Assembly (NCBI RefSeq): GCF_037042905.1
Contig: NC_087255.1
Location: 20,894,001 to 20,958,000, forward strand
Direction of reading: 5' to 3'
Length of the DNA: 64,000 bases
Source: Lytechinus pictus
Lineage: Eukaryota
In this document: in pieces, positions 12,455 to 64,000 of the stretch
Numbering within the stretch: position 1 is the first letter of the stretch
Layout of the letters: every line of letters starts with the position of its first letter
Notes under the pieces: model-generated
Told to the model about the DNA's origin: nothing
The model's database searches: none
What the model saw: the letters and a program-made list of their open reading frames with translations, nothing else
Position numbers and translations under genes: made by a program

Positions 12455-15400
12455 ACAAAATTTTAGTTTAGAATAGTGAATATAATTAAGATTTTAAGAG
12501 CATAAATTTTAGTTTGTTTTTAAAGGACAGTAAAGAACGAGCATCTTTAATCTCATCGTTAAGGGAATTCCAAAAACTTGGACCTGTATATAAGTAAGTA
12601 TTTTGTGCGAGATGCGTTCTAAGGAGGGGCAAGTGAAATTCATTTGACTGCCTAGTGGGATAGTTATGGAGGGATTGGTTTTGGGGAAACATAAAATCAA
12701 ATATGCGTGGCAACAAATTATTTTTATATTTATACATGAATTGACCTAATTGAAATGAATATAATTTTTTTATTTTCATGATTTTATGTTCCAGAAACAG
12801 TTGATCTGTATGAGAACGAACTGGTGCATTACATATAATTCGGAGTGTTTTCTTTTGTAAAATTAATATTTTCTCTAATAAAGAATTATGGGTATTACCC
12901 CATGCTAATATTCCATAATTAAGGTAAGGTAAAATCAAAGAGGAGTATAACATGAGTAATGTGACGGAAGGAAAATAGTGTTTTAACTTATTAATTACAC
13001 CAATATTACGAGATAATGTTTTGCTCACATTAAGAACGTGGGGTTTCCAAGAAAGTTTATTATCAACTATAATTCCTAAAAATTTAATTTGGGAAACACA
13101 TTGTAAAGGTGTATCATCAAATATAATGTCAGAAGGTAAAGAATCAATAGAATTACTAAATAACATATATTTGGTTTTATTTAAATTGAGAGATAGTTTA
13201 TTGGCTCGTATCCATTGAGTCAAATTTAGCAATTCCAAATTCATAATCTGAACTAAGGTGTGAGGGTTCTTGTGAGCAAAAAATACATTGGAATCATCTG
13301 CAAAAAGAATAAACGAAAGAATGTCAGATGATCTGTGAAAATCGTTAATGTAAATAATGAATAAAAGAGGCCCTAATATACTACCTTGTGGGACACCACA
13401 ATTAATTTCATGTTGATCAGAGATGTGATTATTTAAATAAACATATTGTTTTCTTTTTTTAAGGTAATTCCTGAACCACTCCAAGGCAATTCCACGTATT
13501 CCATAATGAGAAAGCTTGTAAAGTAAAATGTCGTGGTTAATAGTGTCAAATGCCTTGGAGAAGTCCAGGAATATACCAATTAGATGCGAATGATCATCCA
13601 AAGAATGGGCTACTTTATGCACAAAATTTAAAAGAGCGTGGATAGTGCTATGTTTTTGTCTAAAACCAAATTGAAAGTTAGTAAATATATCATTGACTTT
13701 AAGAAATTTAGTTGTTCTAACAAAAATTAATCTCTCTAAAACCTTAGAAAGAGAAGAGAGTAAAGATATGGGACGGTAATTACCAGCATCAAGCTCGTCT
13801 CCCTTTTTAAATAAGGGAATAACTTTCGCAATTTTCATTTGTTTAGGAAAAATACCACTCAAAATAGATTTATTTAATATATGTGTCAAGGGCTCAACAA
13901 TAGACGATATGGTACCTTTTAATATAAAATTACTTATGTCATCATGACCAGCACTGTGTTTATTATTCAAGGAGGAAACAATATCGGTCACTTCATAAAT
14001 AGTAGTCGGATAGAAGAAAATGGAATTGGCATTAGGTTGTCCCAAGAATTTAGAAAAATGCTTATTAGATTGTGGAATTTTTTGTGCCAAATTTTCCCCT
14101 ATGGTAGAAAAGTATGAATTTAAAACATTGGCGATTTCTATGGGATCTTCAATATTCCGATTATTAAATCTTATTTTAGTAATATTTGATTTCTTTTTTG
14201 AAATATTCAAGGCTTGCTTAATAACTTAATAAGGAGTTATGCCCTATTCTGATTCTAGTATATGGAAAAAAATTTAACAATTATTTTTTTTAAATGAAGA
14301 AATAAGTTATCAGCATCATGGTTATGCCTGGGCCTACATGTTATTTTTGTCTCACCTGCATAGCAGAGTGAGACTATAGGCGCCGCTTTTCCGACGGCGA
14401 CGGCGGCGGCGTCAACACCAAATCTTAACCTGAGGTTAAGTTTTTGAAATGACAGCATAACTTAGAAAGTATATGGACCTAGTTCATGAAACTTGGCCAT
14501 AAGGTTAATCAAGTATTACTGAACATCCTGCCTGAGTTTCATGTCACATGACCAAGGTCAAAGGTCATTTAGGGTCAATGAACTTAGACCATGTTGGGGG
14601 AATCAACATCAAAATCTTAACCGAAGGTTAAGTTTTTGAAATGTCATCATAACTTAGAAAATATATGGACCTAGTTCATGAAACTTATACATAAGGTTAA
14701 TCAAGTATCACTGAACATCCTGCATGAGTTTCACATCACATGACCAAGGTCAAAGGTCATTTAGGGTCAATGAACTTTGGCCGAATTGGGGGTATCTGTT
14801 GAATTACCATCATAACTTTGAAAGTTTATGGATCTGATTCATGAAACTTGGACATAATAGTAATCAAGTATTACTGAACATCCTGTGCAAGTTTCAGGTC
14901 ACATGATCAAGGTCAAAGGTCATTTAGGGTCAATGAACTTTGGCCAAATTGGGGTATTTGTTGAATTACAGCCATAAATTTGAAAGTGTGTTGGTCTAGT
15001 TCATAAAACTTGGACATAATAGTAATCAAGTATCACTGAACATCCTGTGCGAGTTTCAGGTCACATGATCAAGGTCAAAGGTCATGTAAGGTCAAAGAAC
15101 TTTGGCCACGTTGGGGGTATTTGTTGAATTGCCATCATATCTCTATAAGTGTATTGGTCTAGTTCATAAAACGTGGAAATAAGAGTAACCAAGTATCACT
15201 GAACATCTTGTGCGAGTTATAGTAGTTTTCAAAATCAGCACTGCTGCTATATTGAATCGCGTGATGCAGGTGAGATGGCCAGAGGCATTCCACTTGTTAA
15301 TATTAATCCCTTCCAAATTATTAGAAAATAAAAGTCATAAAAATTAATGTAGCGGCCTATCAAATTGTTTAATATGACCAAAGCAAGATTAATTGGCCTG

Positions 15401-17362
15401 TATATGCGCTGCCTATTGATATTCCTATATAGGCATTTTTGTTCTCGTTTTGTTAGATTTTTTGTTAATTTAAACTTTAATTCAGTATATTCAAAATATT
15501 TAACTTTTCCATTTGCTTTCGCGCTCATATGCCATCATTTAATTTGTTCCGTTTCTGTGCTGTCACTGTACATGCCCCATAGGTACTTTACGCGCATAGC
15601 AGGCTTCGAAGACCTATCGAGTAATGGCGGCCGGTCTCCGCGTAATCACAGCGATTTGACGAAGTACGCCCTCTAGCGTTATTAGTATATATCTCTATGG
15701 GTTTAACTTAGACCATGGTCTAACTCTGTACCAAAATTATGGGGAGCCAAAAGTGTAAAAAATTTTATTAAGTTGTATGTTTCTTATGTTTACTGTGCTC
15801 TTTCCCGAGACATCCATGGTGAAGACAATCATCTTTTTTATACTTCCTAGACAATTATGAATGATTTGAGAGCCAAATGAGCTGAAATATGATATCTCTA
15901 CTGTTAGTGATTTATGTAACAATTAGCTATCCATACTTACACCACAATTTTAAACCCTAGTTTAAGTTAAACCTGACTTTAGAATACGGGCCTTTGTTTT
16001 AGGGTACGATTAAAGGACAAGTCTACCCAGGAAAATGTTGATTGGAATAAAAAATTTAAAAAATCAACACGTATAACACTGAAATTTTCATCAAAATCAA
16101 ATATAAAAAATAAGAAGTTATGACATTTTGAATTTTTGCTTAATCTTACAGAATCCTGGTCAGTATGCAAATGATTGGACTGATGACATCATCTACTATT
16201 TCTTGTTATGAAATACAAAAGCAAAATTACAGAAATATATTAAAACATCTTTTGTCCAAAATCTATTATTGATACAATGATCACTTAAGTTTCGAACCAG
16301 AAAAAAATTTAAACCCGTTTTGAAGTAGAAGCAGAATAAAAAATGATATATAACCATATATGAATCATTTTTATTTCATTATATAGATGGAGAATATTGG
16401 TAACTTTGTGAAATTTGCAGAGCAATTTGGCGTTCCCAAAGAATCCCTCTTCCAGACAGTGGATCTCTATGAAGAACGAGATGTTGGCATGGTATGTAAA
16501 CAAAGACTCTCATCTTTCTTTACTAAATTAGCAGAAACCAGTTTAATGTGTAATGGGAACGGTCGAAGCGGTTTGGAAGCGATATAAGTGATCTTCCAAA
16601 CCAGTTTGGAGAACCACCTTGCGACGTTGTTTTCAAGACCGCTTTGCCTTGTTAAACTGGTTCTAATTAGCAGTGTAATAAAACAGAATAATCCATTGAT
16701 AGAAATATTAATGCATTTTTGTAGTATAATGTTTTATTAGATGGTTGTTTTAAAGATAATGCCAGTTCAGTTTTAGAAAAAAAATTTGAAATGATTTTTT
16801 ACAGAACCAGACCACGCATGTGTCTGTATGTATGAATCAAATATATGGCAAAGAATTGCCAGAAATTGTGTAATTGCTGAGAAATTTCGCAAAATAGCAT
16901 TAATTTCAAACCATTTAGTGTTGAGTCTTTTTTCCAAGCAATAATAATACACTGTCCCACATGTGCTTGTCTGTGTTGGCGATCTTAAGTGTGATCGTTT
17001 TTCAGCTTAGATTTCATGATTTCACAAAGTTCCGTTTGTGTAAGATCAATGATGATATAGTGACAATAAACCTTGCTTTTACAGAATTTCTGATGAAATC
17101 ATGTGTTTACTGCGACTACTTTCATTCATCTTAAATATTTTGTTTTGATGATCAGGTGGTGATGTGTCTGGATCGACTGGGCGGAGTCGCTAGAAAGAAA
17201 GGGTACCCCATCCAGTGGGGAATCGCTGTCGCCGATCCCAACAAGAGAGAATTCACCAAGGAACAGTTGGAGGCAGGCAAGAATATCATTGGTCTCCAGG
17301 CCGGCACCAACAAGGGAGCCAACCAATCAGGAATCAGCTTCGGCAGCCAAAGAAAAATGTGA
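7713..17362 (+). CDS. Calponin/transgelin/myophilin-family actin-binding protein (CH domain plus one C-terminal calponin repeat); 5'-partial
   Basis: Exons 7713-7852, 8355-8433, 16387-16491 and 17156-17362 have AG/GT ends and matching phases (2,0,0). They splice to KAAKYPTDIEIGARKWVEQVVGE...ESLKSGVVLCKLINKL...KKINTSAMAFMQMENIGNFVKFAEQFGVPKESLFQTVDLYEERDVGMVVMCLDRLG...REFTKEQLEAGKNIIGLQAGTNKGANQSGISFGSQRKM*. LKSGVVLCKLIN, MENIGNF, LFQTVDLYE and IGLQAGTNKGANQSG are hallmark family motifs. The start-codon exon was not found in the window. Confidence 0.92.
7860..8290. repeat. (GGT/GAT)n trinucleotide repeat spanning an assembly gap (N run 7946-8277)
   Basis: GGTGAT repeats run into the N block from the left, and ATGATAATG follows it. 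Confidence 0.85.
8626..8730 (-). mobile_element. 3' fragment of a SINE/LINE
   Basis: The minus strand reads AAGCCGGGGTAATAATAATAGCAGGGCCCGCTGGGAGAACAGTTTTCGGAACTGAAGTGGCTAC followed by (TTA)n; homologous to 29613-29720 and 1797-1865. Confidence 0.7.
9398..9965. mobile_element. MITE with CCCGGG termini (CACTA/EnSpm-like), nested in the P-like element
   Basis: TIR of about 45 bp, CCCGGGGGGCCACTTCCATTGACGAGTGGATACCATGCGCGACCA, and its inverse ending at 9965. 2-bp TSD AT. Internal ACCCTAAACACGTA and ACCCTTAACAAGTATT repeats. Confidence 0.8.
11628..14230 (-). mobile_element. 5'-truncated non-LTR retrotransposon (CR1/L2/Jockey-group-like LINE)
   Basis: Uninterrupted RT ORF followed by an 850-bp 3' UTR. 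The UTR holds a (CA/TA) microsatellite, a stem-loop (GAGGGGTCCAC...GTGGATCCCTC, 11850-11893), and ends on the minus strand in AATAAA plus a (TTGAA)n tail (11628-11660). No endonuclease domain or ORF1. Confidence 0.9.
12486..14210 (-). CDS. Reverse transcriptase domain of LINE ORF2 (574 aa, N-terminally truncated)
   Basis: Non-LTR RT motifs: KVIPLFKKG, NYRPISLLS, QFGFR, FLDFSKAFDTINH, GVPQGSILGPLLF, FADD, KFLGIIVD. No stops in frame. Confidence 0.92.
   Translation of the reverse strand: MNISKKKSNITKIRFNNRNIEDPIEIANVLNSYFSTIGENLAQKIPQSNKHFSKFLGQPNANSIFFYPTTIYEVTDIVSSLNNKHSAGHDDISNFILKGTISSIVEPLTHILNKSILSGIFPKQMKIAKVIPLFKKGDELDAGNYRPISLLSSLSKVLERLIFVRTTKFLKVNDIFTNFQFGFRQKHSTIHALLNFVHKVAHSLDDHSHLIGIFLDFSKAFDTINHDILLYKLSHYGIRGIALEWFRNYLKKRKQYVYLNNHISDQHEINCGVPQGSILGPLLFIIYINDFHRSSDILSFILFADDSNVFFAHKNPHTLVQIMNLELLNLTQWIRANKLSLNLNKTKYMLFSNSIDSLPSDIIFDDTPLQCVSQIKFLGIIVDNKLSWKPHVLNVSKTLSRNIGVINKLKHYFPSVTLLMLYSSLILPYLNYGILAWGNTHNSLLEKILILQKKTLRIICNAPVRSHTDQLFLEHKIMKIKKLYSFQLGQFMYKYKNNLLPRIFDFMFPQNQSLHNYPTRQSNEFHLPLLRTHLAQNTYLYTGPSFWNSLNDEIKDARSLLSFKNKLKFMLLKS
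14345..15298 (+). mobile_element. Helentron-associated non-autonomous element (HINE/DINE-like) with an internal tandem array of about 163-bp units
   Basis: T-rich insertion site; 5' subTIR TCTCACCTGCA with an adjacent inverted partner GCAGAGTGAGAC; (GACGGC/GGC)n microsatellite. About 4.7 tandem units start at 14457, 14648, 14811, 14973 and 15136, the four complete ones containing AAGGTCAAAGGTCA. 3' subTIR TGCAGGTGAGA and terminal CTTGTT. Confidence 0.75.
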
Positions 17363-20300: not shown

Positions 20301-20918
20301 GGGTTTAATAAAATTTTGTAGAATATTTGTAGCCTGTAGGTGAGGGAGTGAAGTGACCGAACTGATGACAAAGATGTTTTTCATATTTGTTTTTAAATCA
20401 AAACTGGGGGATTTAGTGAGTATCCGATACTATGTGAAAATTTTAAAAATAATAGGTCTCAAATTTTGTGGACAAGCCTCCCCCCCCCCCCCTCCCTTGC
20501 GTACGACCTGTCTTTTGTTTCGTGTGTCCCTGTATTCTGCTCTGTACCATCGTCTACTTGCTTGTCAATCCATCATGAACCATGGCATAAAGTGCTTTGG
20601 CGCCGTCTGTGACAATAAACCATACAGTATTGAGAAACTGGGCGTTGCGCACTGAACTAGAAATATGTATTTCTAGTTCAGTGGCGTTGCGGCGTGCGGC
20701 TGTAATTAATTCTTTACAATGCAATCTTGCAATGATCTTCCATAGATGAAATTTCTGACTCTGCATGGTTTTGATAAGAAAAAACAATGAATATTTCGAA
20801 GGGGGGATCTTATGATCACATAGCTCTCTATTTTAAACTTCAGTATTTTTTTTGTAAATTTTTACTTCTTCGTCATGTTCATAAACATCTGCTGTTGGAG
20901 TTTTATTTTAAAGTTTAT

Positions 20919-41723: not shown

Positions 41724-44700
41724 GAATTCTATATCACACCTTGAAACAGAATGCAACCATCTGTGCCTGAATGTATCGTTAAGATGACAGTTCGCACTGC
41801 AGTTCACACATTAGCACAATTTTCACCTTGATGTTGTCCATGCAGACAAGATTATTGTTGTCGCCTTCAAGGAAGGAATTAAAGACAGGTGTCAAGGACA
41901 CAATGATGCATTGTCTTTGCCAACGCTTCATAACCTTTTGATTTGTTTTGAAAGGGTTGCGTCTCGTGAAATGAGTCACTAAACCAACCATGCAAAAGCA
42001 GTGTAAATGTTATCAGCAAGTAAGAGTGAAAGTCTATTTCTCAAACTCTATTTGGGGTTCTTATTCTCGGCTTCCAAATAATGAGATTGTTTGCACATTT
42101 TGAAACAGACGTTATGACTAGTCAGTGGGTTGGTTAAAAGCTGAATTCACAATAGAAATGATATGCGTGTATACCATGTCCTCAGCCAATTTGCCGAGAC
42201 CTATATGTGTGTGTGTGTTTATTGGGGTGTTTCTATATGTAACTTGATTCTTCTGAGAGAATTAATTGTGTGGAGCAGATATTCGAATGGGAGTTCCAAT
42301 CAAAAAGAAACAATCGTCAAAACCCTTACATTAAATGTGACTACGCTCGTGTAATTGCAGTGAGTTTAACGGGGACCTGTAAGGATTCTTTCCTTAAAAT
42401 ACCTTGTAGACTGTGAAAGGTAACTGGACTGGAGCCGGGGTAATGATATCCAGATCCTATGGATGTGCATTGAGACTTATTCATATGATAATGTGATATA
42501 TGCTGTACAAGAAATATCTATTATTATTATGTAAGTCAATAATTGTCATTAAATTGAGTCCATAGGACTAGGTATTTGCTAAAGCGATCATTGTTATCGG
42601 TTGCAGCATCGGCTGTAAGGCGAGGAGCATCTTTAAACCTTGAGCAACCCATGCCCTTTGCCCCATTCAGTGTAGGTTCCAGTCGGGGTCTCAAGAACTC
42701 GTAAGTTGATCCTCAAGGTATGCGGGTATCGCTTCATAGGCAGGGCTGCCTCCTACAAGCTTGACCCCACTGAGCTGTTCCTTCAAATGAATGCCTTACA
42801 GCATTGATGCCTTGACTGATAGATTAGGACAAGTTTTGAAACTTTAGGACAAGTTTTGAAACTTTAATGGCTTCCAAAAGGAGTGAAAGTGATTGCAAAT
42901 TCACTCAAAATGATACCTGTCTTTCAAACTGCCTTATTTGTAAATTTTATTTCCACCTTGGATAGAAATTGATGGATTATGAAGTAAGATGAATTGTCTT
43001 TAAAGACATGTAAAGAAACCCCCCCCCCTCTCTCTCTCTCTCTCTCTTATGAAGTTATTATTTTTTTTTCAAGACTAGCCAAATATGTTTGGGGTATGTT
43101 TTTTCCCCAAGCTTTTTCCTCATTTCTGAAAAGTGTTTGGGCTCGAGACAAAACTTGTTTAGGGGTCATATTCTGGCGACAACTTGTTTAGGGGCAAAAA
43201 TGTGTAAATGAAGCCTGCAAAAAACTTGTTTAGGGGGCTATTTGCACACAGAGAAAAACTTGTTTAGGGGGTGTTTGGAAATAATTTGGTAATGCATGTG
43301 TACAACAATGCATTTGGCTGCCCCCCCCCCCCCCCCCCCGGATTATTTCCTTGCACTTCTTGGCCCGTATTCTAATGTGCTGTTTAAATTAGGCCATGGT
43401 TATCCATAGTTATAAACCACAACAGTTGACAAGATTTTAGATTCAACCCAAGTTAAGATGGACCCTAGAATTTAAGGTTAGTTTTTTAACTTTAAGTCCA
43501 TGCCAATGAAGAAAGAGAGAGAGAGGGATTGGGGGAGTAAGGAAGGAACTCAAATAAACTCCTCTTCAGAAAGAAAGTCATTGGACTTGCGACATGCAAT
43601 GTTGTTTGGCTTGAGAACTTACAAGTAATTGCGTAACCGGTCATGTGACTCTCATATGATCTAAAACGGATTTGAAAGAAACTGAACATATCAACACTGC
43701 ACTGAGGGCGGCAACGAAGGGCACTGCACTGTTGCCAGCTTTGTTGTGTGCTTTGCATTGAGCTTTTCATGATGTTGCAGGATCAGAAGTTGGGAACAAA
43801 ACAATGGATCCCCAAATTAATTATGAGCCTGGCCGTGAGTCATGCCCAGCAAAGTTGCTAATTGATAACTTCCTTTCTATGTGGTTAGAAATGGCAAGTC
43901 TGTTACTCACTTGTATCATGAAAAGAAAGGAGGTAGAGGCTGAGAGAGGGAGGGAGAAGGAGAGAGAGAGGGGGGGGTATAGAGAGAAAGGGAACACAAC
44001 AGTTTTTCATCAAGACCTCAGCATGAGAGAATGTGAAACTAAGTACATTGCATTCCAAAAATATTCTTGTCCATGTCGGCTTGTCATCCAGATAACTTTT
44101 CCTGAATGAAATCTGCACTGAAACTATTTCATTCAGTTATTATCCGTGGTATGCATGTACACCAATCATCACCACTCTCATCTATCCAAATGTACACACT
44201 TCAATGTTTAGGGAGAGAGGGGCGGGGCATCTCTGCATTTTTGTGTGTATGGCTCTTAATAGCTAGCTCACCACTGCACATTACTTTTGAATGGGTCTAT
44301 TTACTGTTATGTACTCATGGAATGATTTTACTAGACTCATTACAGTAATGCTCTTTTCTTGAGATTTTTTACAAAATTTAACATATATATACAAGTGATA
44401 CATCTGTTGCATTATATTTGCAAGAGGATGGAAAAATGCAGTGCCAATAGCATGTTTTATGTTTAGCACTGGATGTGAGATCAAATTAATGATTGATATG
44501 TTCACATGGACATTTTTTGTGACTTAATTCTTTAAGATTTCTTCGAGTAGATGAATCCCTGAAGCTGTTACTATGTAACGCAAACATCCACTTGAAAATT
44601 GAGTATGTTAAGTTCCCATGCATGTATAATGTGAGCTCTGTGATTAATATTAATTGTGTGAATGTATACATTTATTCAACATGGGTATGTTCACATTGAA

Positions 44701-58100: not shown

Positions 58101-60642
58101 TGTGCATTTATGGCAGAAAAATCGTGGCCATTAATTTCATTTGTCAGAAATGAATCAATGTATCTGTATACTAAGAATTAGTCAGCCAATCTAATGTGCA
58201 TAGTAACTTAATCAATTAAACTTGAACTTAAAATTGAAAGACCACCAAAACATGAGTAAAATTAAGCCCCCCCCCCCCCCCCCCCGAAAATAGCTGCATC
58301 AACCAAATCAGAAATCAGACACAAAATAATAATCAATAACAGTTTTATATAAAAATTGCCACGACTTTTTTGAGGAACAGAGATACCGGTAAGCAAACAT
58401 AAAAATGAAGAACTTATAAATTTGTTTCTTGTTTTCATTGGATTTTGGTAACCCTTTCCAAAGATGTCTCCAACCTATTCAAATACCTTTTTTAAGAGAT
58501 CTGTACCTTGAAAACTTAATCCAGATGTAATTCCTTTAGAAAATATATATTTAAAATATATTTTCAAAGTGTATTCTAATGCACATGTAGGGTGACCTGG
58601 GACTACATAAAATATGTAATATGCTAGTCCCAGGTCACGCTTCACTATTAAAGAAGTCTAAAATAAAATAAAATAAAGATGAAAATTCTTGGTGACTATA
58701 ACAACTCACTGATTTATCTACATGTAACTTCAAAAAACAATATTTGGGTCAAAGTCAAACACAACTTTAGGAGAAAGAAAAAACCTAGATTGATCAGTGA
58801 AAATTAGAAAATCAGACAAGGAATAACTAAATAAGTTTCATTTGTTAGGAAATGAGATCATTTAGACTATGTAAATTTCAAATTGGCGATTTAGTGAGTG
58901 GATTGTGATTTTATTGTGGTATAAGGACAACTTTTGCATTGTTCATACATACATGTAGATCTGCTAAACTGTCAAGAATTATCGGCTTTCTCCAAAGCCT
59001 AAAGCACTGTTATCTTTAAAGTGGTAATCAAAACAGCATGTTGTTTTATGTCATCATAAAGAATTTTCCTTTTTATATGACTTTTCAGTTATTTTTTAAT
59101 CAGGAAAAATTAGTTGTCAGTTACCTTAATGATAGTACATGTACCATACGTCACAATCATATTCTATGCAGCCAATTTGAAATCTCCAGTAACATTACAA
59201 TACTCAAACCTTTCTTAAAAAATTTTAAGTTCACTCTTTTTTTTATTGTCTGATTTTGATTAATCTGCCTCCACAGTTTGTCTGGCCCTGGATAGGGATT
59301 CCCCTATAATATTTTTTTTTATAGAATCAAACCTACATGTATGGTCAGTTCCCCCATGTCTGCGCGGTCTCCCAAGTCTGCGCACCCGCGTATCTGCGCG
59401 ATTCTAGTAGAAGAAGATACGCAACGAGCACGAACTTTACACATGCAATACATAGACAGGTATTCATAAAAAAATCCGACTCAAAATGGTGAAAAAATAA
59501 TGAATTCAGGGCATTTCATGTGACGGCCTCAAAATACAGCCTTTCTCATCAAAATCTCAGAATCGTGTGCAAAGTGAATGAGTGCGCAGACATGGGGTAC
59601 CATTTTTTTTTTCAATCTGAAAATGACTGCCCCAAGGTTTTTTCAAGAAAATCCTATATTCTCTTTCATTTTTTAATGAGAAATTTGGTATACTTACTCT
59701 CAATAATATAAGGAACATTATTATCCAAAAGATTTTGTGAAATAAGAAGAAATTCATGTTAAATCTTAACTCAAATTGTTAGGTGCGCAGACTTAGGGCC
59801 CACCATCATACATTAAAGCTTGTTAAGATACTTACATCTCTCAGTGGAATTCTTGCTTTGTAGACTAAATTACTCCCATCTCTGTTGAAAACTGAATGTG
59901 GTATGTCTTTGAGGGTGAACACAATATCTGCAGGAGTTTTCTTTGGACCTTGGTCTCCTTCTTTGGGAAATGTGATTTTGGTGCCTTCCTTCCATCCAGG
60001 TTTCACATTGATTTCAAGGATTTTGTCCTCAGTCCTCGTCGTTCGGCCATCTTCATTCAACACTCGACGGTTGATTTTCATTTTCTTTGTGCACCCACGG
60101 AAGATGTCCTCGAGTGTGACCCTTAGGTCATGGTGTACTGGTGGGTCTTGGCGCTTCCTTTGACTGTTGCTTCGCTGTTGGTGGACTCCCGGGAACCCAC
60201 CAAATCCAAAGTCGTCGTCAACGTCCATCGCTTCGGGTTGGCCACCGGCGAAGTTAAAACGAGTGTTCTGCTGGCCGCCCATGCCACCAACATTAAAAAA
60301 CATTTCAAATGGGTTGCTATTTCCAAAGAAGCTTGTGAAGGTTGCGTTTGGATCGCCATGGAATGACCAAGAGTAGTTCTCTCCTTGTTCTCCTTGCGGG
60401 GCACCTGCACCTCCCTTCAGTCCTTCCTCTCCATATTTATCATAAATTTTCTTCTTTTTCTTGTCACTTAAAACTTCATAAGCTTCTGCTATTTCTTTGA
60501 ACTTTTCTTCTGCTCCTTTGCTTTTATTCTTGTCCGGATGATACTTCAGTGCCATCTTCCGATAGCCTTTCTTGATTTCATCATCGGAGGCATCCTTGGA
60601 TACCCCGAGCACCTTGTAATAATCTTTCCCCATCTTGGTCAT
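55105..60642 (-). CDS. DNAJB: DnaJ/Hsp40 class II co-chaperone, DNAJB1/4/5-like (348 aa from the first ATG; 345 aa from MGKDYY at 60633)
   Basis: Exon 1 is 60642-59836 (donor GTAAGT on the minus strand) and exon 2 is 55344-55105 (acceptor TTCCAG), phase 0. The protein has a J domain with HPD ([10 protein letters not shown]...[10 protein letters not shown]...[16 protein letters not shown]), a G/F-rich linker, and C-terminal domains ([49 protein letters not shown]). No zinc finger. The exact paralog cannot be assigned. Confidence 0.95.
59340..59806. mobile_element. MITE in the DnaJ intron
   Basis: Repeated GTCTGCGC motifs at the left end are mirrored by GTGCGCAGAC at about 59582 and 59783; ends ATGGT / ACCAT. 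Confidence 0.55.
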
Positions 60643-61109
60643 AGGTGACGGCTATCTTTGTCTCCTCAACCAGGTATGAAATATTCTTCACCTTCACAAA
60701 GGTAACAAGGAAGCTGTTCGTCCTTAAAATGGCTCCTCTTTAATAAAAAATCTTGAACAGCTGGGAGAACAGGTAGACAATGATTATTGCAAAGTCCTGT
60801 TCGAACGAAACGTTGATCTCAATACCAAATCCAATTCAAAAATCCAACTTTCCAAGACAAGTTCGTCGAAGACGTTGATCGATGTTGCTCAAAATAAGAG
60901 AGAAACAATGTTCTTCACACGTTAGTGTTTGGTAGACAAACCTCGAGATTTTATTACTAGACTGCTCAATCGTTTTACTTGGACTTAAGCAAGCTCTTGA
61001 CGACATTAACGAAAAATTTCTGATTCTTTCGCTTTTCAACCAGCTCATTGACTATCTCCGCAGCTGCGCCGCATAAAGATGATGATGATCCGGCCATGCC
61101 AGAGATAGA

Positions 61110-61175
61110 CCGGCGACGTCACGTAATCCCGTACGAACTCGAATGTACACGAATATTCTCGAAGCCGCTCGAAGC
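61110..61175. promoter_or_regulatory. Heat-shock element array and CRE/ATF-like site upstream of the DnaJ gene
   Basis: In-phase pentamers at 61140-61174 read cGAAt gTACa cGAAt aTTCt cGAAg cCGCt cGAAg, with a perfect 3-unit HSE at 61150-61164. GACGTCA lies at 61115-61121. The patch is CpG-rich and about 500 bp upstream of the ATG. Confidence 0.8.
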
Positions 61176-61358
61176 ATTTGCGATGTAAACAAGGCAAAGA
61201 GGGCGCGCGCGCGCAAACCAGGCTTGAACACTTGCGTATAAGTCGCCAATTTTGGCTATTTGGTTTTTACCCCCTTGAGTTATACACAGGGCTGTCAACA
61301 TTTGGCGTGTTAGTGAGCAACAAGGCTTGTTTCCCGCCACACCGGTTGGGGGGGGGGG

Positions 61359-61391
61359 CATAGAGATATATACTTATAATACATCTCTATG
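61359..61391. mobile_element. 33-bp remnant made only of the two termini of the CATAGAGAT P-like element (probable excision footprint)
   Basis: CATAGAGATATATACT + TATA + ATACATCTCTATG, flanked by G11 and G9 runs that are compatible with a G8 TSD. Confidence 0.7.
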
Positions 61392-62658
61392 GGGGGGGGG
61401 CACCTATTTTCGCCATCCAGAAAACATTGAACAGTGGGAACAGCTCCGGCATTTCAGGCAAATACTACGTTTTGACAATGTTTCCAGTAACTTTTTGCCC
61501 TGTTAGCTGCCGTAAAGCATTAATCGCCCCAGACATCCAGTTATCTTAACCAACTTGAACATGTAAACAAAAATACAACAAATCTCAATACCAAATCCAA
61601 TTCACTAAATCCAATTTTAAATATCCAATTAACGAAAAAAAAAACCTAAGTATGGTATTTGACAGCTACAATTTGTTTTTAATCTTTTAATTTTTTTTTT
61701 AAAGAGAATACTTTCATAATGATTTCGTATACAAATTCACATTTAGGATACAAGCTCGAATATATCCCATATCGTAGTATAATTAATTTTTTTTAAACAA
61801 AATACCTAACAGTTAATAAGTTTCAGAACAGCATTTGAGTGAATAAAAGGAGACTTACCTCCCAAACTTTTATTTCTCACATAGTCAAGCTCACATTGCT
61901 AAATGAAAAAAAAAGTTTACAAAAGTGATAGGCCCTATAGTGCTTTATAGAGAGGATATACCCCTCCCCACCGTTTAATCGTTACCCCCCCCCCCTAAAA
62001 AAAAAAAAAAAAAAAACACGCTAGGGGTCATTATGCCTATAGGTATGATAGTTCGGCATAATCCAACCATGATTGGCCTATAAAATATTGAAAATAAGTT
62101 ACTGATTTGGAAAGGGGTGTAAAATTATAAATAAAGAAGAAATTAAGGACGATACGAAGAAAACCGAAAAATAGGCCTAGATATATATTTATCACTACAA
62201 TCAGCCAAAAATCCCTTATACCCATGTAATTATTATTCATTTATTTCTGTTTTCTTTAGACAGGGTGGTCTCTTCTGTACATAAAAAAACTGATTTTCGA
62301 GAGAGCCCTGTATATTAAACAATCATATACAATGGTGAACAATTACAGAATTAATAAAAAAAAAAACTACATGCAATATAAAAGAAATGAATTTCAAAAG
62401 CATACATATTAAATTAACAATACATAATAGATACATTGAGCGATCGAAATGTAACAGTACAATCATAATATCATTATAATTAAATAATTATCATTATCCA
62501 ACGAGAAGTCGATAACAGTACAGCTAGTAGACAGTAACTCAGATCTACGCATAGATACTGGATACCAAGGATTCATGTACTGGTATATTAAGTCAGTGTG
62601 AAAAGGCCCCGCTCTATTTATAAACACTGAGTAAATTATGCATGCTACGAGTACACAC

Positions 62659-62956: not shown

Positions 62957-64000
62957 ATGGCACCAAGAAAAGCACCAGCGATTGGAATTGATTTGGGTAC
63001 CACTTATTCTTGTGTTGGAGTATTTCAGAATGGAAAGGTGGAGATCATTGCTAACGATCAAGGAAATCGGACCACACCCAGCTATGTCGCCTTCACAGAT
63101 ACAGAAAGATTGATTGGAGATGCAGCTAAGAATCAAGTGGCAATGTAAGTAAATTTTCTGTCTTTGTAATCATACCTTATTGCTTCATTACAATCTAAAG
63201 AGTTTACATGTAAAAGGGACTAAATCCACCTTTTCTCATTCTTCATAAATCTTTTTTTTATTTCTTCAAAATCTATGTTTCATTTCAGGAATTTCTTACA
63301 CTATGATTAAGAGTCATCAATATATGAAACAAAAATGCAATTAAAGATCCCGCAGATATCTTTTATTTTAGGTGATTCTTTATATATTTATCATTTTTAT
63401 GGGCCTTTTTGCATCATGAAAAGCTAACTTCACGTTGTTGCTATATCAGATATATATAATTTTTTGGAGTTGCACTACAGTCAGTTTGATCGATGCACAT
63501 GGTGATGTTTATTTAAACATGCAAAAAACAAATGCCGAATGATAAAAATGGATTTAGTCCCTTTTGCGTGTTAGCTCTTCATAGAATACCGGGTAATGCA
63601 TGTTTCTTGTTATAATTTGATCATAAAATTCAATTGAGGTTTATAAATGGCGACCTTCGATTCAGCCGTCAGCGGCTATCACGGTGACATGTCTCTTGAA
63701 TTCATTTTTTATCACTGACTTAGTAATTCATTCAAACTGAACTTCATATAATCGTCATTACTTTTGCAATATAGTCAAAGTATGTTTTGAACGCAGAATA
63801 TAAGTTAAAACTCAAAATACATGTAAATATCAAAGTGTTGCGGGCCCCCGGGGGCCACTTACATTTTGTGTGAAGTTTAACATTGTTACAGTAATCAAAT
63901 CTTCAATGAGTTTAATCATAAAGAAAACGTTTTTATGTTTGACTACGATTACAAATTAATGAAGTCTGCACAATCTTTTCTCATTATTACAGGAATCCTA
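62957..64000 (+). CDS. hsp70: Cytosolic Hsp70-family chaperone, 5' part (continues beyond the window)
   Basis: Exon 62957-63144 encodes [62 protein letters not shown], including the Hsp70 signature IDLGTTYS. A phase-2 intron 63145-63992 (GTAAGT...TTACAG) splits the ATG codon, and the exon from 63993 restores ...VAMNP. No signal or transit peptide. Confidence 0.96.
63197..63582. mobile_element. MITE in Hsp70 intron 1
   Basis: AAGAGTTTACATGTAAAAGGGACTAAATCCA is mirrored by TGGATTTAGTCCCTTTTGCGTGTTAGCTCTT. Confidence 0.7.

Follow-up and report, generated by a model that had tools for sequence, protein, structure and literature searches.

A 33-nt insert in the DnaJ/Hsp40 upstream region of Lytechinus pictus was found to carry, in inverted orientation, the two tips of a TIR element of which a full-length copy lies in the same 64,000-nt stretch of DNA (the window), and is very probably an excision footprint of that element family. 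That the footprint was left by an enzyme cutting ~17 nt inside each end is well supported, as judged from the sequences of three relics, and to the whole account, P-like excision of a family member leaving this relic, a probability of about 70% was assigned.

The insert proper (CATAGAGATATATACT-TATA-ATACATCTCTATG) occupies 61359–61391 in the context ...CACCGGTT-G11-CATAGAGATATATACT-TATA-ATACATCTCTATG-G9-CACCT..., and the span of 61348–61400 assigned to it by the initial annotation holds this insert together with the G runs on its two sides. Its composition was as described there, 16 nt of one element end, 4 nt of filler and 13 nt of the other end, and alignment bore out that the two TIRs differ at position 10 (right end A, left end G) and that the relic has one of each. 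In both arms the element tips face outward and border directly on the flanks, and a member of the parent family is present at 9037–15699, as in footprints generally. The left arm shares a common prefix of 16 nt with the right element end and of 9 nt with the left end, and the right arm one of 13 nt with the left end. The exact 13-mer CATAGAGATRTAT gave four matches in 64 kb, namely both ends of the element and both arms of the relic, and together with the exact identity of the arms this shows that the pattern did not arise by chance. In an alternative 16+17 parse, TATA falls inside a 17-nt right arm with 2 mismatches, and when joins of n + n nucleotides of the two tips were modeled on the relic, the best n was 17, with n = 16 and n = 18 only slightly worse. 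The surroundings of the relic are single-copy within the window. Since the flanks are G homopolymers, compatible with every TSD length from 0 to 9 bp, the length of the TSD is not readable at this site.

Table 1. Positions in the window of the relic, the full-length element, the neighboring heat-shock genes and a second footprint-like object.
Feature	Position	Strand	Remarks
TSD of element, left copy	9029–9036	+	GGTTTAAC, exact 8 bp
TIR element, full-length, non-autonomous, same family as relic	9037–15699	+	begins CATAGAGATGTATACTAAT...; other end, inverted, CATAGAGATATATACTAAT...
Nested MITE	9398–9965	+	CCC-G(n)-CACTT termini, 7-bp TSD ATAATAA; inside element
Nested LINE reverse-transcriptase ORF	12486–14210	-	RVT_1, E = 7e-38; only long ORF of element, not its own gene
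TSD of element, right copy	15700–15707	+	GGTTTAAC, exact 8 bp
Second footprint-like object	20642–20691	+	8-bp TSD GCGTTGCG on both sides of 34-nt (17+17) palindrome CACTGAACTAGAAATAT/GTATTTCTAGTTCAGTG
DnaJ/Hsp40 first coding exon	59806–60642	-	ATG at 60642; DnaJ match at 59809–60651; database homologs
Heat-shock element (HSE) trimer	61151–61163	.	GAATATTCTCGAA; upstream of DnaJ
Relic left flank, G11 run	61348–61358	+	last 8 G (61351–61358), putative left copy of G8 TSD
Relic left arm	61359–61374	+	16 nt, CATAGAGATATATACT; right (A-type) tip of element 9037–15699
Relic junction filler	61375–61378	+	TATA, 4 nt, between arms
Relic right arm	61379–61391	-	13 nt; left (G-type) tip of element, inverted; reads CATAGAGATGTAT
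Relic right flank, G9 run	61392–61400	+	61392–61399, putative right copy of G8 TSD
Hsp70 first coding exon	62957–63145	+	HSP70 Pfam, E = 1.6e-24

The full-length copy lies in an intron and has TIRs of ~33 nt (30/33 identical) that start with CATAGAG, with weaker subterminal inverted similarity extending to ~110 nt. The tip of the family reads CATAGAGAT... Besides the nested LINE and MITE, the element holds microsatellite-like DNA and tandem repeats of 162–192 nt, of which ~4 units at 14412–15218, next to the LINE, could be either the LINE 5' region or subterminal repeats of the element. The nested MITE belongs to a family with CCC-G(6-13)-CACTT... termini, seen with 7-bp TSDs ATAATAA here and TTCCTGA in a L. 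variegatus copy (locus L001, 7984–8561). The initial annotation had suggested looking for a THAP9/P-type transposase ORF between the same TIRs; none was present in 9037–15699, where only the RVT_1 of the nested LINE was recovered, and none elsewhere in the window. Searches against Pfam gave no match for the ten further open segments of the element and no transposase among 28 more open segments across the rest of the window; a 129-aa open segment at 10879–11265, considered as a transposase candidate, was dismissed as AT-rich hydrophobic noise. With no transposase in the element, its superfamily is therefore not readable from protein. A scan of metagenome, viral and prokaryote collections with a 24-nt TIR query produced no matches and hence no further full-length copy.

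Both genes flanking the relic were confirmed as heat-shock genes, the best database match of the DnaJ at this locus being named for Lytechinus pictus. The site had been placed between the Hsp40 and Hsp70 promoters, which holds as far as the two genes are concerned; the relic itself lies in the DnaJ upstream region, 717 bp from the DnaJ/Hsp40 ATG, ~200 bp beyond (distal to) the DnaJ HSE at 61151, and ~1.6 kb from the Hsp70 ATG. Transcript contigs at DnaJ end at ~60941–61101. The effect of the insertion on the heat-shock locus is probably small, consisting of a 33-nt palindrome and longer G runs at that distance from the HSE. The suggestion that the element had targeted a promoter or heat-shock region was not upheld: it concerns a single case, the full-length copy and a second relic from a metagenome (L007, below) are intronic, and further relics occur in contigs from runs that are probably RNA. 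Several further features of the locus were recorded. The DnaJ upstream region has a 37-nt direct repeat (92% identical) on either side, at 60816–60851 and 61582–61618; compared with the window, RNA contigs from two samples lack 8 nt at 60843; and the stretch 62233–62287 is short and multi-copy in 4/4 runs, with many contigs having unrelated flanks, and is probably a fragment of another repeat. The window, with 35% GC, contains 18 G or C homopolymer runs of 9–19 nt (e.g. 9945–9962, 43321–43339, 58267–58285). Their flanks are unrelated, so that the runs do not form one repeat family, and the idea that they might offer paralogous empty sites was thereby ruled out. Derivation of the relic G runs from the CCC-G(n) MITE family was also ruled out, since L. 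variegatus shares the flanking CACC... without that MITE at this point.

For comparison with the sister species, the L. variegatus locus (L001) was obtained via the DnaJ homolog P0004; intergenic DNA of the two species aligns at ~92%. The relic insert is absent at the orthologous site, which reads CACCGG[GCTTCATTTCG]GTTGGGGGAAACACCCATTTT (also written TTGGGGGAAACACCC), so that either it is confined to the L. pictus side or L. variegatus has lost it. An insert-free site in another species, which the initial annotation had called for, was thus found, though as G5AAA and not as a clean G12. A G8 duplication would require G12, and the alignment is blurred by nearby indels; with G5AAA in the sister species and homopolymeric flanks in L. 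pictus, the 8-bp TSD noted at the relic was not substantiated. L. variegatus has a 578-bp MITE of its own (L001 7984–8561) ~55 bp upstream of the relic site, of the same family as the MITE at 9398–9965. Elsewhere in this locus, at L001 10848–11642, Hsp70 exon-1 sequence runs into a copy of the DnaJ C-terminal exon in reverse orientation, the whole being annotated as the 223-aa P0004; this reflects an inverted partial duplication or else an error of assembly. At L001 18756–18812, direct repeats of 8 bp (TAAACAAC) enclose a 57-nt insert whose ends are inverted over 9 nt (ACAGTTTAA...TTAAACTGT); it could be a very small MITE or be due to chance.

The window was also scanned blind for inserts of 12–120 nt with perfect inverted ends of >= 8 nt, recording the longest flanking direct repeat. 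Only 2 of 271 candidates had a direct repeat of >= 6 bp, namely the relic (33 nt) and a 34-nt palindrome at 20650–20683, and ten shuffled windows yielded no candidates of this kind. The second object (20642–20691 with its TSDs) belongs to a TIR family different from that of the relic and to the same size class; its parent TIR was not found within the window. These two window objects (33 and 34 nt) constitute the only unbiased sample of relic sizes.

Further relics were sought in sequencing data. Contigs of four public runs were compared with 60500–62300; by coverage pattern, two samples and one more diverged sample are probably L. pictus, and the DNA run is probably L. variegatus. In all four runs, contigs from other loci match only 61359–61391/3, with homology stopping exactly at the tips and units of 30–36 nt. 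One unit (X1, record 2) is 3 nt shorter than the relic with 0 substitutions, and its junction is therefore different; its flanks read ...TAG GGCCAGCC (unit) GGCCAGCC ACAG, a clean 8-bp TSD. Two contigs of X2 carry 33-nt units with 2–3 substitutions and flanks that suggest xCACACCA, X5 record 23 is 2 nt longer than the relic, and X17, the DNA run of probable L. variegatus origin, contains at least 14 such contigs with a summed depth ~14 times that of unique flanks. The run copies thus show multiplicity, different flanks, 8-bp TSDs and differing junctions; their size range is narrow partly because they were selected by >= 88% likeness to the query. None of the contigs in the four runs joins the relic to its own flanks, because contigs break at G runs.

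In JGI metagenomes the two-armed pattern, searched with a gap of <= 14 nt, gave 6 matches, of which L007 is the only true relic. It reads GGAGACTC-CATAGAGATGTATTATAGGTACCTATACATCTCTATG-GGAGACTC at 480–532, a perfect 17+17 palindrome plus a TAT slip between exact 8-bp TSDs, has a related TIR (CATAGAGATGTATAGGT) and lies inside an intron of a HECT ubiquitin-ligase gene; the splitting of the HECT-ligase exons by introns identifies L007 as animal DNA. The other 5 matches (L002–L006) were rejected as bacterial-type hairpins with stems extending beyond the motif or as lacking a TSD. That the pattern also picks up such hairpins is what can be said for regarding the relic as a chance AT-rich palindrome or hairpin in a G run, unrelated to transposition. 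Against this stand exact matches of 16 nt and 13 nt to the two different ends of an element that the window itself contains, with no further exact match of the 13-mer there, the lack of TSD-flanked objects in shuffled sequence, and the absence of the insert in the sister species, and the chance reading is effectively refuted by the uniqueness of the 13-mer, the identity of the arms and the blind scan with its shuffles. Two expectations of the initial annotation were borne out by this material: further short relics with 8-bp TSDs exist at other loci (TSD GGCCAGCC and, for the related TIR of L007, GGAGACTC), and no arm is longer than 17 nt in the relic, in L007 or in the unrelated relic at 20642–20691.

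The occurrence of near-identical units at many loci, in two species and with 8-bp TSDs could also be explained if the 33-nt unit were itself a mobile micro-element (an ultra-short MITE) transposed as is, no full-length element ever having been at the site. Near-identity is, however, expected in any case, because 29–33 of the 33 nt are TIR tips, and junction lengths vary (30, 33, 35–36 nt) while the arms are constant, as expected of independent repair events. In addition, unrelated families yield the same size class, and, since P transposase binds at internal positions adjoining the TIR (PMC7776569), a unit of 33 nt would by analogy be expected to lack the cis sites for mobilization. We consider a micro-element improbable.

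The relic is better accounted for by excision. A member of the CATAGAGAT... family (~33-nt TIRs, 8-bp TSD) would have entered a G run, ~700 bp ahead of the DnaJ/Hsp40 start codon, in germ cells of the L. pictus lineage and would later have been excised from there. In the proposed mechanism, transposase would cleave the transferred strand right at the tip of the element and the opposite strand ~17 nt into each TIR, and because of this internal cut the donor flanks would keep ~17-nt 3' overhangs of TIR sequence. During end joining the overhangs would then have been shortened to 16 nt and 13 nt, with 4 nt added or templated, giving TSD-16-TATA-13-TSD; alternatively, 16+17 nt may have been joined from a slightly different parent element. 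The footprint reading is well supported because the architecture is the same as that of sequenced Drosophila P excision junctions.

Aborted gap repair could in principle produce a similar object. The relic would then be an extreme internal-deletion derivative, in which, following excision or a break within an inserted element, a few nucleotides were copied inward off the sister copy and the nascent ends were joined; no long stagger would be required, and a hAT-like or other 8-bp-TSD transposon could serve as the source. Most of the products recovered in Drosophila do arise when synthesis stops short and the ends are then joined (PMC2895639), a 4-nt filler is present in the relic, and Pfam gave no transposase in the element from which to assign a superfamily. 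Such repair would nevertheless give arms of any length, usually much longer, whereas both relic arms are <= 17 nt, the relic of another family at 20650 has arms of exactly 17+17, and those of L007 are 17+17 with a 3-nt slip; no two-ended derivatives of the family of intermediate size were seen in the window. A hAT-like source is further disfavored by the CATAG start, which is off the usual hAT terminal consensus, and by the four readable TSDs, which have G and not T at position 2. This origin is accordingly held to be unlikely, if less so than the micro-element.

For the excision reading, the assignment of the enzyme is by analogy: since excision would work as it does for Drosophila P, the enzyme was most likely a P/THAP9-superfamily transposase, which we regard as a good inference and a probable one. 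The initial annotation had claimed a P-family transposase with Drosophila-like cleavage. The second part is favored by a two-ended remnant of one family with arms of <= 17 nt that match published Drosophila P junctions, while membership in the P family is a probable reading, no transposase having been found in element or window. For several other, rarer superfamilies with 8-bp TSDs we know of no account of the cleavage chemistry, and a non-P enzyme with a long stagger is possible.

In mechanistic terms P transposition is most unusual for its long stagger, and to our knowledge a stagger of ~17 nt has so far been mapped or measured only for the Drosophila P transposase. Natural scars of ~2x17 nt in a deuterostome suggest that the stagger is old and conserved, and we lean towards the view that ~17-nt staggered donor cleavage is an ancestral P/THAP9-type property also at work in echinoderms. 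If so, sea-urchin genomes would hold a countable record of excision in the form of 2x17-nt scars, and the CATAGAGAT... family may well be the first in this genome with a scar tied to a full-length element. This tie, to a full-length TIR element that belongs to the family and has an 8-bp TSD, offers a direct route to the responsible transposase, and once identified that transposase could possibly provide a new active P-type tool for echinoderms.

Among known transposon systems, Mutator and Transib-type excision is not known to leave TIR tips. In hAT excision it is the flanks that form hairpins, and the junctions show altered TSDs and are not known to keep TIR tips; the relic is like hAT footprints in its association with an 8-bp TSD and with cut-and-paste excision, and unlike them in that 13–17 nt of each tip are kept, where a hAT footprint has no TIR nucleotides. 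The CATAG terminus of the family and the G at TSD position 2 likewise lie outside the hAT consensus. Tc1/mariner footprints (TA-CATG-TA type) share with the relic a countable excision record and transposon-end nucleotides between TSD copies, but consist of 2–3 nt per end at a TA, compared with ~16–17 nt per end and an 8-bp TSD here. P-superfamily transposases are marked by a THAP domain at the N-terminus together with an RNase H-like catalytic domain of P type that is interrupted by a GTP-binding insertion (Pfam Tnp_P_element and related).

Several traits of the present family resemble those of P-type elements. The TIR of ~33 nt with its CATAGAG start and subterminal inverted similarity is a resemblance and not proof; an 8-bp TSD occurs at the element (GGTTTAAC), at another relic (GGCCAGCC) and at L007 (GGAGACTC), the G runs of the relic being only compatible with one; and retained ends of ~17 nt are indicated by the sequences of the relic (16+13 or 16+17), the object at 20650 (17+17) and L007 (17+17, plus 3). 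TIR starts for comparison are CATGATG in Drosophila P (PMC2895639) and CATACC in Pdre2 (PMC10983969). THAP and Tnp_P_element proteins are encoded by echinoderms including L. variegatus (PMC13228809), and 1360 and Galileo are relatives with 7-bp TSDs (PMC3698922). Zebrafish Pdre2, with terminus CATACC... and an 8-bp TSD (PMC10983969), is, with zfTHAP9, alike in being a deuterostome P-like system with an 8-bp TSD, a CATAC... terminus (CATAG... here) and internally deleted non-autonomous copies (PMC10983969, PMC7776569). It differs in its 13-bp TIRs, against ~33 nt here, where the relics imply a cut ~17 nt inside; in the literature surveyed, no statement on the Pdre2 cleavage stagger was found.

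Drosophila P transposase cleaves the 3' strand at the element tip and the opposite strand 17 nt into the 31-bp TIR, gives 8-bp TSDs and favors promoters (PMC7776569). On the donor ends there remain 3' overhangs of 17 nt that are not complementary to each other, and junctions consist of TSD, <= 17 nt, microhomology or templated insertion, <= 17 nt, and TSD, as in acccagacCATGATGAAATAACATA and TATGTTATTTCATCATGacccagac (PMC2895639 Table 2); templated junction insertions are typical of end joining at P breaks (PMC2895639). P targets are GC-rich and weakly palindromic, with core GTCCGGAC (PMC2577343), and most of the five TSDs collected here (GGTTTAAC, G8, GGCCAGCC, GGAGACTC and, from the other family, GCGTTGCG) start with G and end with C, although they are too few for a conclusion. 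The two systems differ in the echinoderm host, in a TIR unrelated beyond CAT, in that no transposase was found here, and in that the relics are natural and fixed whereas the Drosophila junctions were recovered experimentally; they agree in the architecture of the footprint including filler, in the 8-bp TSD, in TIRs of ~31–33 nt starting with CAT, and perhaps in targets of the G...C type.
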